From contig OZ176057.1 of NCBI GenBank assembly GCA_964247055.1, forward strand, positions 1,240,001-1,304,000: 64,000 nucleotides of DNA. Reading direction: 5' to 3'. Position 1 is the first letter of the stretch, and every line of letters begins with the position of its first letter. Both the position numbers and the translations under genes were made by a program. Origin of the DNA: Paragordius varius (Eukaryota; Animalia; Nematomorpha). This document shows, piece after piece, positions 14,020 through 44,085 of this stretch. The notes below the pieces were generated by a model that ran no database searches, was not told the origin of the DNA, and saw only the letters and a program-made list of their open reading frames with translations.

Positions 14020-15360
14020 TTACATTACATGTTTTCACTCGTGAGAGCGGTCATGTTATACAACCTGTCTCGCCATAAAACTCTATCTATGGCGTCCTCT
14101 GCATTAAGGTCGTATTCTGCTAGCTCTCTTTTTACTGTATCTATCCATTTCGTTTTAGGTCGCGCACGTCCTCGTTTTCCCTCAACTATATAACCATCTA
14201 TTATTTTTGCAATATAATTAGAATCTCTCCTTTCAATGTGCCCGAACCAACGTAGCCTATTTTTTGCCATTCTTTCCACTATTGATTTAATATCTGTGCT
14301 CCCACGAATAAATCTATTCTCGATTCTGTCCTTTCTTGTTACCCCACACATCATTCTGAGCATTTTCATTTCAGTCACGTTAAAATATCTTCGGATTTTT
14401 TGACACCCCACGTCTGTGAATTATACATCATTGAGGGCTGGACAACTGAACTGTAAATCTTACCTTTCACTCTAACATCAATATTTCGATCGCATAATAC
14501 GCTCGAAATTTTCTTCCAATTTACCCAACTGCTCTTTATTCTTAAATTAATATCATCAGTCAACGAACCATCTGCACTTAGCATAGCTCCCAAATATTTG
14601 CAACTTTCTTTGCCTTTCAGAACCCAACTATCATCAACTACCATTTCATGTTGTGGACCCCCAAAAGTAATAAGTTCGGTTTTTGCTTTGTTTACTTTCA
14701 GACCATATTGATCCAGCATAACAACCCATCTGTTTACCGTTCGCTTTAACTCAGCCAAATCAGACAAGATGATTATGTCATCTGCATACATTAAGTACCA
14801 TCCTGAACTCACATTAACAACCTTGGCTACCTCGTCCATACAAATTATAAAACAATAAGGGGCTGAGTGATGAGCTTTGGTAGACTCCATGCTTTATTGA
14901 AAAGGGCTCTGATAAACCTTGTGGACTTTTAATCCTGGAGGTGTGTGATTCGTACATTTTTTGTAACAACTTAATTATAACTTTTTGGCACCTTTTTACG
15001 ACGGAGACTCCACCAAATAGTTTCTCTAGGAATCCTGTCAAACGCCTTCTCTATATCAATCAAAACCCCGTGTAATTCTTTCTTTTTTTCAATGTGTTTT
15101 TCAATCAACCTCTTAACCGCATGTATAGGATCTACTGTTGACTTTCCTGGCATGAAACCAAATTGATTTCCTTCTATAGATATCATTTTCCTGATTCGCT
15201 TTTCAATTATTTTTTCAAACAATTTCATAGTGTGCGACATAAGTTTTATCCCTTTATAGTTACTACATTCATTTATATCACCTTTTCCTTTAAATAAAGG
15301 CACAGTTGAACTTTCCTCATGAAATATGCTTCTATAAAATTTTATCAATAAATCAAAGGC
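14020..15360 (-). mobile_element. 5'-truncated, frameshifted RTE-clade non-LTR retrotransposon (reverse transcriptase)
   Basis: ORF-track pieces contain KGIKLMSHTMKLFEKIIEKRIR, QFGFMPGKST, DIEKAFDRIPRE, YADD and RLRWFGHIERR (an RTE C-terminal motif), split over four frames, with a short (TAA)-rich 3' tail near 14020. Confidence 0.93.
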
Positions 15361-37704: not shown

Positions 37705-40700
37705 ATGGGTTTTTGTACTTTTCAAAACAATATAAACAAAAATAAAATTAGTAGCCCTCAACAAAATCGAGAAACCCAAATGAGTTCTGGAGACGCTGGT
37801 CATTTGGGAGATGAAAACAATTCCAATTCGAATGATATAGAGGCCATTCCCTGTATGAATATTGTTTTCATTTTATAAAACAGGCATGTCCAGCATGCTA
37901 TTTTCGGATAGCAAAAGTACTTTAAAAAACTTAAAAAATAAAAAAATTGAATTTCATTCATAATTTTACGATTAATAAGAAAATATATCATACGAAATTG
38001 GGAATAAACAAACCAAAAATTATTTGCAGAATTCAAAGAGATTTGTGTTGGACACCTCTGTAAAAAAAAACTGCAGGCGGTATTTTAGCGTTATTAAAAT
38101 ATTAACTTTACTCTCTAACACAATGGTACTCATCAAAAAATTTTGAAATTACAAAAAAATATTTTTCTGGTTTTAAGGGTCAACATTTCACAGCTGTTTG
38201 ATACATTTGCATTCTGCAGACTGAAACTACAAGTTAGATTGACCTGATTTCACCCCTGATACCGATACTGATTTCCAAATTCTAAATAAGGACACCAAAA
38301 ATTTTATATGATTGGAATGTTTTTATTGATTGGAAAAAAAATACTTCGATTGAGTGGGAAAACATTTTCATTGACTGGAAAAATGTTTTTTGACTGGGGG
38401 CAACGATACATTTTATGTCATTCATCGTCTAGTTTCTTATAATCCCTCCTAATTTATTTTTATTCATAGGTGTTATTCAAAGCAACAACAGTTTGAATAG
38501 TGAAATATCCATAGATTATACTTATTTGTTATCTCAATATGCCCGATTTTTGCGCGTTTTATGGAATAACGGGGAAATTCAAACAGGTGATCTTGACCTT
38601 ATTATCCAAGAAAACTTTCTGAGCGACTGTGCTGACAAAAGTATTACATCATTTTAATATTTATTTATGAAAATTTAAAATTGTCATATGGAATATAGAA
38701 AAAATTATTTTTATTAAAAATAATTTTGACATAAGGACTAGGGTTGAATATAACTGAAAAATTTTATTCCGATTTTCATTAAAGGAATAACACACACAGT
38801 AATGTAGCATGCTGCATAACATGATAATAAGTCTTTAATATAAAAAAATGTATTTGCTTAGACATGGCTTATATTTAGAGATAAATTTGAAATAATTTAA
38901 AATATAAAATTTGGTGATAAACATTCTCAAACCATTTATTAATGGGTTTTAACTATATAGCTTAATATATATTTAAGATAAAAAAAAATATTCGTATTAA
39001 AGTAAATTTCCATATTTTTTTGATCTTAATACCAACTTTAATACCGGGTACCTGACAACATATTAACGTTACACTATATAAATTTTGGGGTAGTTTTCTA
39101 TCCCACTGGGGTTTTCAAACAAATCGACAATTAATTATTATTTTATGCAAAATACAGAAATAAGCCTTATATATACTTTTGGCTCAAACTAGCTAATTAA
39201 ATATTGGTTGAAAAATATAATTCATACCTTAGGTTTTGGATTATGGATCAAAAAATATTCGAATACTAGCGTAAATCTCGTGCTGCTACGCAGCCCGAAG
39301 AAGTCCTCCGGACTTCGGGGAGGGAGCTATTTGAAAAAAGTGACAATAAAATCACATATGTGGATTATTTCGAAACATTATTTAATAGCTACGATCTCAT
39401 AGGAATTTCAAAATGGTGCATTTATACTAATTTGTTTACTTGGGCGAAAAAGAGATTCAAAAATTATTGTTGTGGACTTATTTTTTTCAAAAAAATGGCA
39501 TTTTACGGGGGGGTAAAAGGAGGGCCTAAATTAAAAATGCGAGCCGACTATGTTCGGCGCAATCGAAAATAAGTAAAAAAAATCATATTTGAAATTGAAT
39601 GGTCCAACACGTTCTCCGGAAATTTTCGCAAAGATACGATTTTTGTGGACTTGTTTTCAAAAAAACCCGTTTTTCACACGGGGTGGGCCTGAACTGGGGG
39701 CCTATATCAAAAAAAGGGCGAAGCTATTGTCGGGACATTTAATGATTATATTTTTTCGATATTTGGATTTGAATGGGTCTACCGGATTTTCGAAAAGAGA
39801 TCACAAAGCCAGCATTTTCCATTTTTATAAATATATAGATTATTGATTCCAATCAAGTAGATTTGTTTCTATTTTAAGTAAATTTTAGGCTATATAAGCT
39901 GCAAATAAATTTCATCTATAATAAATTTTAAAGGTTAGAAAACTATGGCAATTAAAATATTATTGAAATTAATTTTATTTTAGATTTTAGGGCTTGGGAT
40001 TTTATTAACTCTAAACATTCATGTAATAATAATTAAGCATAAAAGTAGGTCTTTAAATCCAGTAAATTGTTTTACAAGGGTATTATAGAATATATAATGA
40101 AGTTTATTTTTACTATAATTTTTTTAGTTTTGAGGTCAATCCGAAGCTTTAAAAAGTGCCATAAATTAGAAATTTGTCTTAATTAAAAATTGGAATATGC
40201 TTATTTTATACGTATTGTAATTTTTAAGAGAAAAGAGTCAAATGCTCATAACCGATTCCCATATATCCTTATTTACATTTTAAAGTTTAAATATAGTTAG
40301 TTTTATTTTTATGGTTTCAAACTGGGCCAAAAAACCAGCAGAACCGAAAATGGGTCGATTATGGGGTTTTGGGACCGGTTCTAGAAACCGCTAATTAATT
40401 GGCTCTGAATTTTCAGATAACAACTATTTTCGGTAAATTTTAAAAGATTTTAATACATTTATTGTACGAGGAATAAAATCTTGTACGAGCTAAATAGCGT
40501 AAAGGTAAGGAACTTTATTACAATAATTATTATATTTTAAATATCTGAGTTTTGATTGAACTATGCGATTCCACCTTTCAAAAAACAAATCGAGATTAAA
40601 ATAAAATCAAAAGAGCTTTATTCGACAGACCCCTCAGCCATAAAACTTGAAAATAAGTTCCAATTCCACTGATTTTATATTTCAATAAAATTTTAAACGA

Positions 40701-41477
40701 ACATTTAAATTGCATTTAAACTTTTTTTTCTTCACAGGCACTACAGCTTTGCCAGAAAAACGATTTAAAGCGCATTCGATCGTATTGTTCAGTAAATCCA
40801 AATTTTTGCGTGAAAATGTTTTTGAACAAAATTTACAATCGACTTCTGCCACTAATATACACGCTCCCGCTCTCAATAACATTAATAAAAACTTTGAGAG
40901 ATGCGATGAATGTGCCAAAAAAACAAATTCCACCAACATTCTTGAATCGTCAAAAAAAGGAAATTCAAGACTATGTAATGAAAATACCGAAATTACTAAT
41001 GTTGAAGGCAACAATAATATAAACGATTTAGTAAAATATGAACCCATCACCCTTCCCATTGTCGTAACTCCTAAAGCGTTTCAAGTAAGTGGTTTTTAAT
41101 CAGATTAAACGCTATAATCTTCAATAATTCTTGGGACTTGTTAAAAGCCCTTACTTACTAATTTAGATATTTTATTATCTTAAAACATAAGACATCTTAT
41201 GAATTTTTTAAAAAGTGAATTATGAAACTAGTTAGTTAATTAATTGATTATTTTTTTAAAAGAATCTTGGTTTAAGGGGCTTAATTTTGCAAATTTTAGT
41301 ATAATCACGTATCGTATTATAACCATTTACATTCGTCCCTAGATTATTTTAGAGTATCTGTACACAGGCGTAAGTCGAGTCTCCAAAGAAAATTATGCCG
41401 AAGTCCAAGTTGCTTGTGAAGCTTTAGTGATTGAAAGTGATTCCCTTACGGATATTTGCAAAAATTTTCAGGAATAA
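37705..41477 (+). CDS. Small BTB/POZ-domain protein (about 266 aa)
   Basis: Exons 37705-37852, 38470-38640, 40738-41084 and 41343-41477 (TAA) are in phase. BTB motifs GDLDLII, KRFKAHSIVLFSKSKFLRE, ITLPIVVTPKAFQIILEYLYTG and ENYAEVQVACEALVI...DIC are present. The first exon and start codon are less certain. Confidence 0.85.
39188..39840 (+). mobile_element. Repeat family E copy in BTB gene intron 2
   Basis: Starts actagct and ends atatatagat; homologous to 10620-10760 and 11770-12125. Confidence 0.6.
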
Positions 41478-42121
41478 TTATATATATATATATAATGAAA
41501 TTATCATTTCAAACTAATTATAGAATTTATGAAATGTTTGTGAAAAGATATTCCAGTATTTAAATTATATATTTTTTTGCATAACATCTTCAATTAAATA
41601 AGTAGCAATATCGTGATAAAGTTATTTTTATGAAAAGACATCGAGTGTTTTTTTTACTTAAACGCAAAAACATGAGAATACCAATTCTAAATTTTAATGA
41701 TTGTGTTACTGGCACAAAAAAAATTTTGGTTAATTGACAAATTTAATTTGGCTAAGAAATATGGGTAAACTAAGAGTTAAATTAAATTTTTTGGACCAAT
41801 CATAGTCTAAATATTGCAATTCTATAGAATATAATAATAATAATAGATGATGGTAAATGACGGATTGATTATTTGTAATTACAGTTGTAAAATCCGTAAT
41901 ATAAGAGTGTTTCTTAGTTATTAAATTATTTTCTATGAAATTCCTAAGTAGCTATACTCTAAATCTAGGGTAACCTAGTGTTGTTTCAGTTTACTTTCAA
42001 ATTTTCAGCTTAGTTTTCATAAATATAAATTTAATTTAATTTAAATTCAAACCAACTGCATTTATACCAAAATTGCAAAGTTGGTTATATATACGAAAAC
42101 GATATTTAAAAACCCTAAGTA

Positions 42122-42187
42122 GTCAAATAGTTGTGTCGTACTGATGAGTGCTAACAAGCACGAAACTAGTTTACGATTACTATTGAC
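42122..42187 (+). ncRNA. Minimal type I hammerhead ribozyme (Penelope-type)
   Basis: Stem I gtcgta/tacgat (extendable through tag-at/tac-tat and gtc/gac), core CTGATGA (42141-42147), stem II gtgct-aaca-agcac, GAAA, minimal palindromic stem III (ACTAGT), cleavage triplet GUU with the predicted cut after 42171. Confidence 0.85.
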
Positions 42188-42554
42188 GAAGGGTTTCACA
42201 TATTGTTTATAATTTCTGTTAATAATTAGCTTTCTATTAATTTTCGATTATCATTATATTACACATTTTACAACTGTTATAATAATAATAATAATAATAG
42301 ATTATATCGATTGTTATTGCAGTCTTATACAGCAATCATTAAATAAATAATAGGTGCTAAAAATGGGATAATATTTTGATAAAAAATTAAAGAAATTTCA
42401 AATTCATGCGTTTGATGCAAAAAAATAATAAAAATGGTATGAAGGATGTGTACATGAATACGGCATTAGATTTATGCACTAAAAGCGACTTGAGATTTAT
42501 AATCCCAATTAAGCTACATTTTAGTTAGGATTAAGAATTTGGCCCCTGTAAATA

Positions 42555-42852
42555 TACCATTTACAATTCAAATTCTCCCTTGAACAATTCAAATTCACCA
42601 TCGAACAATTTAAATTCACCGTTTGTACAATTCAAATTCACCCTAAAAAACAATTAGTGTTTCGATCTAATATAACTTATTACTATTTATGGCATAGTTT
42701 ATTATTTTTTCAGTATTATTATAATTTTGCACAAAATTTTATTTTTTAAAAATATATATTAAAATATAGGTAATTTTTAATTTTAAAAAACACATAATTT
42801 ATTTGAGGGTAAATTTGAATTGTTCGAGGGTGAATTTGAATTGTAATTGATA
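42555..42852. mobile_element. MITE family A, full copy
   Basis: taccatttaca...tgtaattgata termini with 21-bp units. Confidence 0.85.
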
Positions 42853-43499
42853 CATAATAATCAGTGTTTTCACTACACACATTTATGGTTGAAGCAGGCA
42901 TCATATCTGCAAAATGTATTTTTAAAACAAACGCAAAGTTTACCGTGTGAATTGTGTTATGATAAAATTAAAAATTGGTATTTCGAATTTGATTAAATTT
43001 AATATACGTAGTATATAAATGATAATAACGTGATAAATATATGCTTGTAGATTTTGATCACTAAATTAATTGATGGGTAGTCTAAAGAATTTTACTGGCA
43101 CCTAAACTAGGTCAAAAATATATATGAAGACTAAAACTGTGTATATTTGCTCATGGAAACCGATAAATTTTGAAAATTTATTAAATAAGAATACATAGTT
43201 TTGCCATTTATTATTTATCATATATCGTAGTGTGATTAATATGACTTTTTTGACTGCTATTTAAACGCTTTCCTCGGTTATCAAATTATATAATCCACAA
43301 TCTACCTACTCATATATTAAAGTCGAGCTTGCATATTTTTCTAACATAATCTGATTTAGGCTGATAAGATAAAAAATGGTTATCTACAAATAAAAATGCC
43401 ACTACATACCCTTTGGGGTATTATTGTAATAAAAAGCAATTAAGAGAGTTTTTATTGGGTCAAATTTAAAAATATTAAACATGCAATATTTTAATAAAT

Positions 43500-44085
43500 T
43501 GTTTGTAAAAGTGTGAAAGATCTTAATCTCAGACAATTTTTTATTATTGTAGTGGGTTTTATTTATTACTTTAAAACCTTTGAGGTAGTTATCATACCAG
43601 AGCGATTTGAAATTTAAATTAAAAATGTTAAAGATATTAAATTGAACTTATAAATATACTTTTAGTTTTTTAGGCACATTATACATTTTTCCAAAGAGAA
43701 AAGGGATCTTTTCTCAAACTTTTTGCCGCTATTTTCTTTCTATAGATTTATTGATCGCGCTAATGCAACATTGAAATAGACGTATATTATAGTTAGAAAA
43801 TGTAAATAATTATCTTTTAAAAGTTTCAAGCTACACTTTACCAGAAAAAACTAGATATTCAATTTTAATATCAGCTGTTCGTTTTGGTAGTGTTTTGGAA
43901 CTGTCCCAATTTTTGCTAGAAGTCACAAAAATGTAATCTTATTAATTCCAAATACATAAGAAGAATGATAAATAAATTTAAATAAAATAATTTTCAAAAC
44001 TGTAGTTTGTTTACAAAATTAAACTCAGGGATATCAAATTACCCAATATGTAAATTAAGTCATAAAAATGAAAGTAAGTGTTTAA
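43500..44085 (-). mobile_element. Repeat family C copy
   Basis: Reverse-complement homology to 1265-1762 (ctcaaactttttgccgct, aatatcagctgttcgttt, ttacccaatatgtaaa). Confidence 0.55.

Follow-up and report, generated by a model that had tools for sequence, protein, structure and literature searches.

A hammerhead ribozyme downstream of a BTB-like gene in Paragordius varius, probably a remnant of an old retrozyme insertion

Why does an intact-looking hammerhead ribozyme lie a few hundred nucleotides past the stop codon of a BTB-like gene in Paragordius varius? Either the gene has come to use it or it arrived with a mobile element and has not yet decayed. The stretch of DNA that we analysed (the window) is 64,000 nt long (G000:C8:1240001-1304000), and we scanned it together with the rest of the genome (110.6 Mb, roughly 26% GC). 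A preliminary description of the motif had called it a solitary minimal hammerhead, had seen in it the relic of a Penelope- or retrozyme-type retroelement, and had suggested that it might have been exapted as an mRNA-cleavage or 3'-end switch. Our view is that the hammerhead is very probably part of an old, dead, ORF-less insertion of a non-LTR retrozyme of the Penelope-dependent type, and that it is drifting rather than being used by the host.

Identity and structure of the hammerhead

The type I hammerhead motif occupies 42122-42187 on the + strand, as judged by direct reading, cmscan, folding, a core pattern, and covariation. By direct reading it runs GUCAAAUAGUUGU-GUCGUA-CUGAUGA-GUGCU-AACA-AGCAC-GAAA-CUAG-U-U-UACGAU-UACUAUUGAC. 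The core CUGAUGA lies at 42141-42147 and the GAAA at 42162-42165, with A15.1 at 42165. Between them is helix II (42148-42161), which has 5 bp (GUGCU/AGCAC) and the loop AACA. Helix I has 6 bp, formed by GUCGUA (42135-42140) with UACGAU (42172-42177), and is extended distally, past an internal loop, by GUCAAAUAGU/ACUAUUGAC. Loop III is CUAG (42166-42169); U16.1 follows at 42170, and H17 is the U at 42171. Helix III is a single base pair (A15.1-U16.1) with the CUAG as its cap, and so ACUAGU forms a 6-nt palindrome. According to the reading and the cmscan alignment, all of the catalytic core positions are filled (C3-U4-G5-A6-N7-G8-A9, G12-A13-A14, A15.1-U16.1, and an H17 that is not G). Cleavage is predicted between 42171 (H17 = U) and 42172.

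The core, the 5-bp helix II, the 6-bp helix I with its extension, and the palindromic ACTAGT had all been reported before, and direct reading bears them out. The word "minimal" does not hold: instead, we read the motif as a canonical type I hammerhead of metazoans whose helix III is very weak (a 1-bp stem and a palindromic tetraloop), similar to HHR_Amex1. On the other hand, it was right that this type of helix III, a single base pair with a palindrome, is one that is known to need dimerisation. HHR_Amex1 itself, from newt and axolotl, cleaves poorly alone but well as a dimer (PMC7229834).

At its gathering thresholds, Rfam matched no family in the whole window, which is what one would expect if AT-rich DNA had produced the hammerhead consensus by chance. 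When a 301-nt stretch was searched with cmscan in E-value mode, the best match was Hammerhead_HH9 (25.8 bits, E = 2e-4, as compared to a gathering score of 52), and the UAC(U) that follows helix I falls on the HH9 consensus. The score is short of the gathering threshold because helix III is nearly absent and helix I is divergent. So the search with hammerhead models that had been proposed as a check does find the motif in E-value mode, but not at the gathering threshold.

Counts are harder to square with chance. In the 64-kb window we found one match to a relaxed core pattern, where shuffles predict 0.04, and the 30-nt core (with up to 2 mismatches) occurs at least 205 times in the genome, against 0 times for the reversed control. 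Covariation is also hard to explain by chance. When the window's family was aligned with a second hammerhead family of this genome, one that is unrelated to it, RNAalifold recovered helices I and II, and 10 of the 18 consensus pairs show compensatory double changes between the two families. Meanwhile, the core is identical in both, and loop III is palindromic in both (CUAG in the window's family, CGCG in the second). Given the shuffle expectation, the copy number, and the covariation, we reject a chance match and put its probability close to nil. Because of the compensatory pairs and the recovered helices, we consider it confirmed, as far as sequence can confirm it, that 42122-42187 is a genuine type I hammerhead (Rfam clan CL00010).

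The second family has helix I GUGUGG/UCACAC, helix II GUCC/GGAC, and loop III CGCG within the palindrome ACGCGU. It is abundant (loci L060-L079, for example G000:C4:786563-786634 and C1:3529103-3529175), it reaches up to 38 bits on the HH9 model, and it forms head-to-head pairs that are 300-600 bp apart. Genome-wide, the HH9 model gave 5404 rough first-look candidates, other families included.

In the predicted fold of the monomer, C3-U4-G5 is paired with the CUAG loop, and this fold would be inactive. For two copies of the window's hammerhead, RNAcofold predicted -28.2 kcal/mol for the dimer versus 2 x -12.5 kcal/mol for the monomers, which is a slight preference for the dimer; the textbook double hammerhead was not returned.

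The insertion and its relatives in the genome

Whether the hammerhead is solitary depends on where one looks. Within the window there is indeed one copy: our search found only one insertion of this hammerhead family and no other convincing hammerhead. No inverted or direct partner hammerhead lies within the window, where the inverted arm is 57 nt long and lacks the motif, and no Penelope ORF is present there either, just as the preliminary description had said. In the genome as a whole, the copies of the core noted above show that it is not solitary at all. Genomic copies and tandem arrangements had been suggested as something to look for with BLAST, and both exist. The 96-nt region around the motif has 335 first-look candidates in the genome, and the 40 that were scored are 93-98% identical.

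Some of these copies are direct tandems (C4:11695916/11696360/11696805, C7:1844649/1845104, and C1:4310820/4311266). They are spaced 444-455 nt apart, which gives a unit of about 455 nt. The 455-nt unit is 25.7% GC and its longest stop-free stretch is 62 amino acids, so it is ORF-less and non-autonomous at best. As a circle, it has a minimum free energy of -80.5 kcal/mol (z = -4.3 versus dinucleotide shuffles), which means that it is strongly self-paired.

We also mapped 35 loci onto the unit. The outer ends of all of their arms fall at unit positions of about 115-123 or about 149-161, some 120-155 nt past the cleavage site. The inner junctions vary from locus to locus, and the arms are unequal in length. 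In most insertions, a forward arm comes after an inverted one; single-arm copies are also common. The outer ends are of two types, "short" (...ACAACTGTTAT) and "long", the latter with 33-38 additional nt. At each of the six paired loci whose ends we read in detail (L009, L018, L024, L032, L033, and the window), one arm is long-ended and the other is short-ended. The whole structure at these same six loci is surrounded by target duplications of about 10-18 bp, longer than 4 bp as in retrozymes.

Two insertions of the family that look independent, L014 (G000:C7:~5558200) and L018 (G000:C4:~5137100), have nearly equal flanks (…CATAATATCCCCCT…TTAAGATTATTTTGCAC…). This suggests that both entered another repeat at one and the same site, or else that the locus was duplicated.

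Many of the copies are pairs of inverted repeats that have identical, outward-facing ends and are bounded by target duplications. This is also how a cut-and-paste DNA transposon of the foldback or MITE type would look, with terminal inverted repeats that happen to carry a hammerhead. But such an element should not have a different inner junction at each locus and arms of unequal length, nor ends that are systematically unequal, with a tail of 30-38 nt on one side. Nor would we expect its target duplications to vary from about 10 to 18 bp, or single-arm copies to be common, or copies to stand head to tail as direct tandems of a 444-455-nt unit. Furthermore, an element that encodes a reverse transcriptase (RT) and a GIY-YIG endonuclease shows the same layout in this genome (see below). 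A foldback or MITE origin therefore gets very little credence from us, and we reject it because of the variable inner junctions, the unequal ends, the variable duplications, and the direct tandems.

The window's copy fits the pattern of the other loci. It is 433 bp long (41848-42280), which is less than one unit, and it includes a single hammerhead, so there is no dimer partner in cis. Its left end is an inverted, 5'-truncated arm on the - strand (41848-41904), which corresponds to about 88-142 of the unit and lacks the hammerhead, as determined by BLAST against the unit, by the inverted repeat I4, and by the ends. The outer part of this arm (41848-41877) is the one-sided 30-nt tail. The forward arm (+ strand, about 41905-42280) has no tail; BLAST against the unit and comparison of the ends show that it runs from about unit position 180 through the hammerhead to about 117-123 and finishes with the short end (...ACAACTGTTAT). 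It is 85-88% identical to a young tandem unit (from L033). Direct reading identifies the target-site duplications on the left (TATAATAATAATAATAGA, 41830-41847, a flank that is kept in a paralogous locus) and on the right ((AAT)n...ATAGA, 42281-42301). The target duplication is 18 nt, the right copy exceeds the left by one AAT, and both lie inside a (TAA)n microsatellite. Overall, the window's copy differs from the family majority by 13.8%, as compared to a median divergence of 2.8% among the copies sampled, and it is among the most diverged of these. The earlier idea that the motif is the relic of a Penelope- or retrozyme-type retroelement is thus upheld by the copy number, the tandem unit, and the insertion signature.

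Just downstream of the insertion, at 42549-42860, is another repeat, whose inverted arms (42552-42612 and 42795-42855) are 84% complementary. It is built of subrepeats of about 21 nt (ACAATTCAAATTCACC...) and resembles a MITE or foldback element. Hammerhead insertions at L002, L003, L004, L008, L010, and L013 also have it a few hundred nt away.

If the unit cannot move itself, what might move it? A proposal that has recently been argued for is that retrozymes travel as non-autonomous passengers of Penelope-like elements (PMC7229834; bioRxiv 10.64898/2026.07.22.740005). This genome has many lineages of Penelope-like elements, and several of these have open, full-length frames. Matches to GIY-YIG have open frames of up to 788 amino acids and are arranged as head-to-head pairs. 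For example, a young head-to-head element at L058 (2579-6454, i.e., G000:C6:305579-309454) has an open frame of 743 amino acids. Database relatives of this protein have RVT_1 plus PF28514/PF26215, and some also have GIY-YIG; the best of them are only 31-35% identical to it. The arms of the L058 element are 99-100% identical and share a common terminus, yet one arm is 30-36 nt longer than the other. A 10-bp target duplication (ATTAATTTTT) brackets the element, and sister copies are present in L059.

The tails of these autonomous elements bear minimal hammerhead variants, UUGACAA (U3-A8) and CUGAGGA. When we compared our unit by BLAST to 10 Penelope-like loci from several lineages, including their 3' tails, we found only AT-rich noise. 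This lack of similarity in the loci compared counts against a link with them, and it is the shared insertion signature that points to mobilisation in trans.

We also noticed some other fragments of mobile elements. In the 3' tail of L058, at 6376, there is a U3-A8 hammerhead variant (UUGACAA...GAAA) with a 7-bp helix II. Within the window, a 171-amino-acid ORF at 14378-14890 (- strand) matches RVT_1 (E = 1e-11) and, being unrelated to the genome's Penelope-like ORF, is probably a fragment of a LINE. Finally, L045 (G000:C7:6294-9428, near the end of a contig) has an array of CTGACGACGGATAGG...GAAAAATGACTGAC repeats with a spacing of 133-167 nt; next to it are a GIY-YIG fragment, which is broken, and 150 nt of the hammerhead unit. 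L045 may be a subtelomeric cluster of Penelope-like elements.

We propose the following life cycle. Tandem transcripts would be cut by paired hammerheads, with the palindromic ACUAGU serving as a shared helix III, and the cutting would free RNA of unit length, perhaps as circles. The freed RNA would be copied into DNA in trans by the RT and GIY-YIG endonuclease of an autonomous Penelope-like element. This enzyme would cut both strands of the target and prime on both of them, starting from an internal site, which would give head-to-head arms whose ends share one internal position of the template. A purified Penelope-like protein does cleave and extend both strands of its target, and reverse transcription was initiated internally (PMC11167929).

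The BTB-like gene and its duplicate

What we call the BTB-like gene is upstream of the insertion, on the + strand. It includes an exon-like ORF at 40710-41096, which matches positions 20-51 of the PF00651 profile (E = 0.086, below the cut-off), and a last exon at 41343-41477, which matches positions 67-105 (E = 0.074) and ends in a stop codon at 41475-41477. With an E-value cut-off of 0.01, the exon pieces have no match in Pfam. With a cut-off of 10, BTB is the sole match of each piece and the profile positions are collinear; these scores are for the pieces taken separately. The hammerhead begins 645 nt past the stop codon on the same strand, in agreement with the roughly 650 nt reported before.

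Could the hammerhead be part of a long 3' UTR? If it were, then it might dimerise in trans with abundant retrozyme transcripts that bear an identical ACUAGU loop, cut the BTB-like mRNA, and thereby lower its expression or set its 3' end. The position is suitable: it is on the sense strand, and in a local scan, there is no canonical AATAAA from the stop codon to the hammerhead, with the first one at 42342, past the motif. However, ATTAAA is present at 41593, 41781, and 41920, between the stop codon and the hammerhead, and any of these could end the mRNA earlier. (The whole window contains 421 instances of AATAAA versus 437 expected, which is uninformative because the DNA is 26% GC.) And a lone hammerhead in a transcript would not be expected to cut well, given that the predicted monomer fold is inactive, with C3-U4-G5 paired to the CUAG loop, and that hammerheads whose helix III is a single base pair are poor at cleaving as monomers (PMC7229834, PMC4209133).

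The control that weighs most on whether the host uses the motif is a segmental duplication. Window positions 40438-43566 align over their full length with C8:1327422-1330614 (L047), which is 47 kb downstream on the same chromosome. Within the aligned stretch are the exons of the BTB-like gene, the insertion (together with its inverted arm and its target duplications), and the repeat that follows it. The genome has just these two copies of the locus, and both keep the stop codon in the same position. By BLAST, the paralogs are 83% identical overall, with 91-98% identity in a central block (41338-42637) and 53-90% in the introns and the farther flanks. Over the 1.2 kb past the stop codon, insertion included, the paralogs are 91-98% identical, on a par with the exons. 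This block could be counted in favor of a functional 3' UTR, as it could be a long conserved or constrained one, but gene conversion could fit the high identity equally well.

Within the block, the hammerhead does not stand out as conserved. Its identity between paralogs is 92.4%, while that of the neighbouring sequence is 91.9-96.8%, and it is the least conserved sub-block of the post-stop region, a difference that is not significant. To assign changes to one copy or the other, we polarised them with the family majority. Outside the hammerhead, the private changes are 17 of 329 element sites in the window's copy and 16 of 329 in the sister. Within the 66-nt hammerhead, there are 4 private changes in the sister and none in the window's copy. 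H17 is a further site that differs: the window's copy has U, the sister G, and the family C. G17 is disallowed, and the sister also has mismatches in helix I and in helix II, so its hammerhead is predicted to be dead. In other words, a motif used by the host should be conserved above its flanks in the paralogous locus, and in the sister it is not. Because the sister's hammerhead decays freely, nothing suggests that the neighbouring gene uses the motif.

The window's own copy deserves a closer look, as it seems to have changed less than it might have. Since the duplication, its hammerhead has had 0 changes (at most 1), as compared to about 3.4 expected from the 17 of 329 sites outside. The Poisson probability is about 0.03 for 0 changes and about 0.15 for at most 1, and this test is post hoc; we view it as a weak hint of constraint that does not convince us. 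Also, the hammerhead differs from the family majority at just 2 of 66 sites, as compared to 53 of 332 outside (Fisher P = 0.003), and both of the differences should be compatible with activity: H17 is changed from C to U (at 42171), and a U.G pair in helix I has become U-A (with A at 42173). These observations would favor use by the host.

However, the hammerhead is less diverged than the rest of the unit in other copies across the family as well, by about 3.5-fold (1.4% versus 5.0%), so this is a property of the source lineages. Furthermore, both of the window's differences recur in a few other sampled copies, and the A at 42173 is common to the window and its paralog. Variants that are shared or that recur imply that much of the divergence lies between source lineages whose ribozyme would be under selection. 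Our best reading is that the window's intact hammerhead reflects inheritance from a selected source lineage plus chance survival. The insertion would predate the local segmental duplication and would have drifted afterwards.

So exaptation as an mRNA-cleavage or 3'-end switch, as put forward in the preliminary description, seems very unlikely to us: the hammerhead has many copies elsewhere, the copy in the window is quite diverged, the sister's hammerhead has decayed, and the motif shows no excess of conservation. Copy number, divergence, and decay of the sister are largely what would be seen if the motif were one of many neutrally decaying copies. A narrower proposal is that the window's paralog alone keeps its hammerhead under selection, as a sensor that dimerises in trans via ACUAGU within a long 3' UTR. 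We would be most surprised if this were so. If it were, then the level of the BTB-like mRNA would be tied to the abundance of retrozyme RNA. As a remnant of a retrozyme, the window's motif is an ordinary decaying copy from a known class of hammerhead-bearing retroelements, and it matters little for the question of exaptation. The duplication may be of more use, as it provides a built-in neutral control for how quickly a hammerhead decays outside of the element's life cycle.

Comparison with known systems

Hammerheads have been exapted by hosts in some cases, such as the discontinuous hammerheads in the 3' UTRs of rodent CLEC2 genes. Our motif does resemble the host-exapted intronic HH9 and HH10 hammerheads of amniotes, in that HH9 is its best match in Rfam and it follows a coding region on the sense strand. 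But host-exapted hammerheads are single-copy and conserved across species, while this one has hundreds of relatives (at least 205), scores far below the gathering threshold of HH9, and has decayed in the paralog.

The insertions look much more like those of Penelope-like elements. Known features of Penelope-like insertions are 5' truncation, partial tandems, an adjacent inverted and 5'-truncated copy, a tail of 30-40 bp at one end, and a bias towards microsatellites (PMC8557442). The family that we describe shares the variable 5' truncation, the inverted 5'-truncated copy, the 30-40-bp tail at one end, the partial tandems, the microsatellite target, and a hammerhead whose helix III region is palindromic (PMC4209133, PMC8557442, PMC11167929). 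It differs in that the unit has no RT/GIY-YIG ORF and that its hammerhead is a canonical type I form rather than a min-HHR (PMC4209133). The autonomous elements of this very genome likewise carry minimal variants, and among the 10 loci compared, they have no tail sequence in common with the unit. The family's dozens of clean insertions, each with two arms that end at shared internal positions of the unit, a tail on one side, and duplications of 10-18 bp, agree with what the in vitro work on a Penelope-like enzyme would predict. They may amount to a genomic record of cleavage and priming on both strands, with internal initiation, for a non-coding passenger.

The closest match is to the non-LTR retrozymes of metazoans (PMC7229834). 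Like them, the unit is ORF-less, low in GC, self-paired, and a few hundred nt long, and it has one type I hammerhead. Also like them, the family includes short direct tandems (at the level of the family) and has target duplications of more than 4 bp, and autonomous Penelope-like elements reside in the same genome. There are some differences. With its roughly 455 nt, the unit is large as compared to the RNA sizes reported (170-400 nt), at their upper end. The copies are mostly dispersed, truncated, head-to-head insertions instead of long arrays. And helix III is weak, as in amphibians (HHR_Amex1-type), whereas the hammerheads of invertebrates are described as usually having a more stable helix III (PMC7229834). 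We consider the family to be a new one, of a kind that is already known: a metazoan non-LTR retrozyme with Penelope-style insertion.
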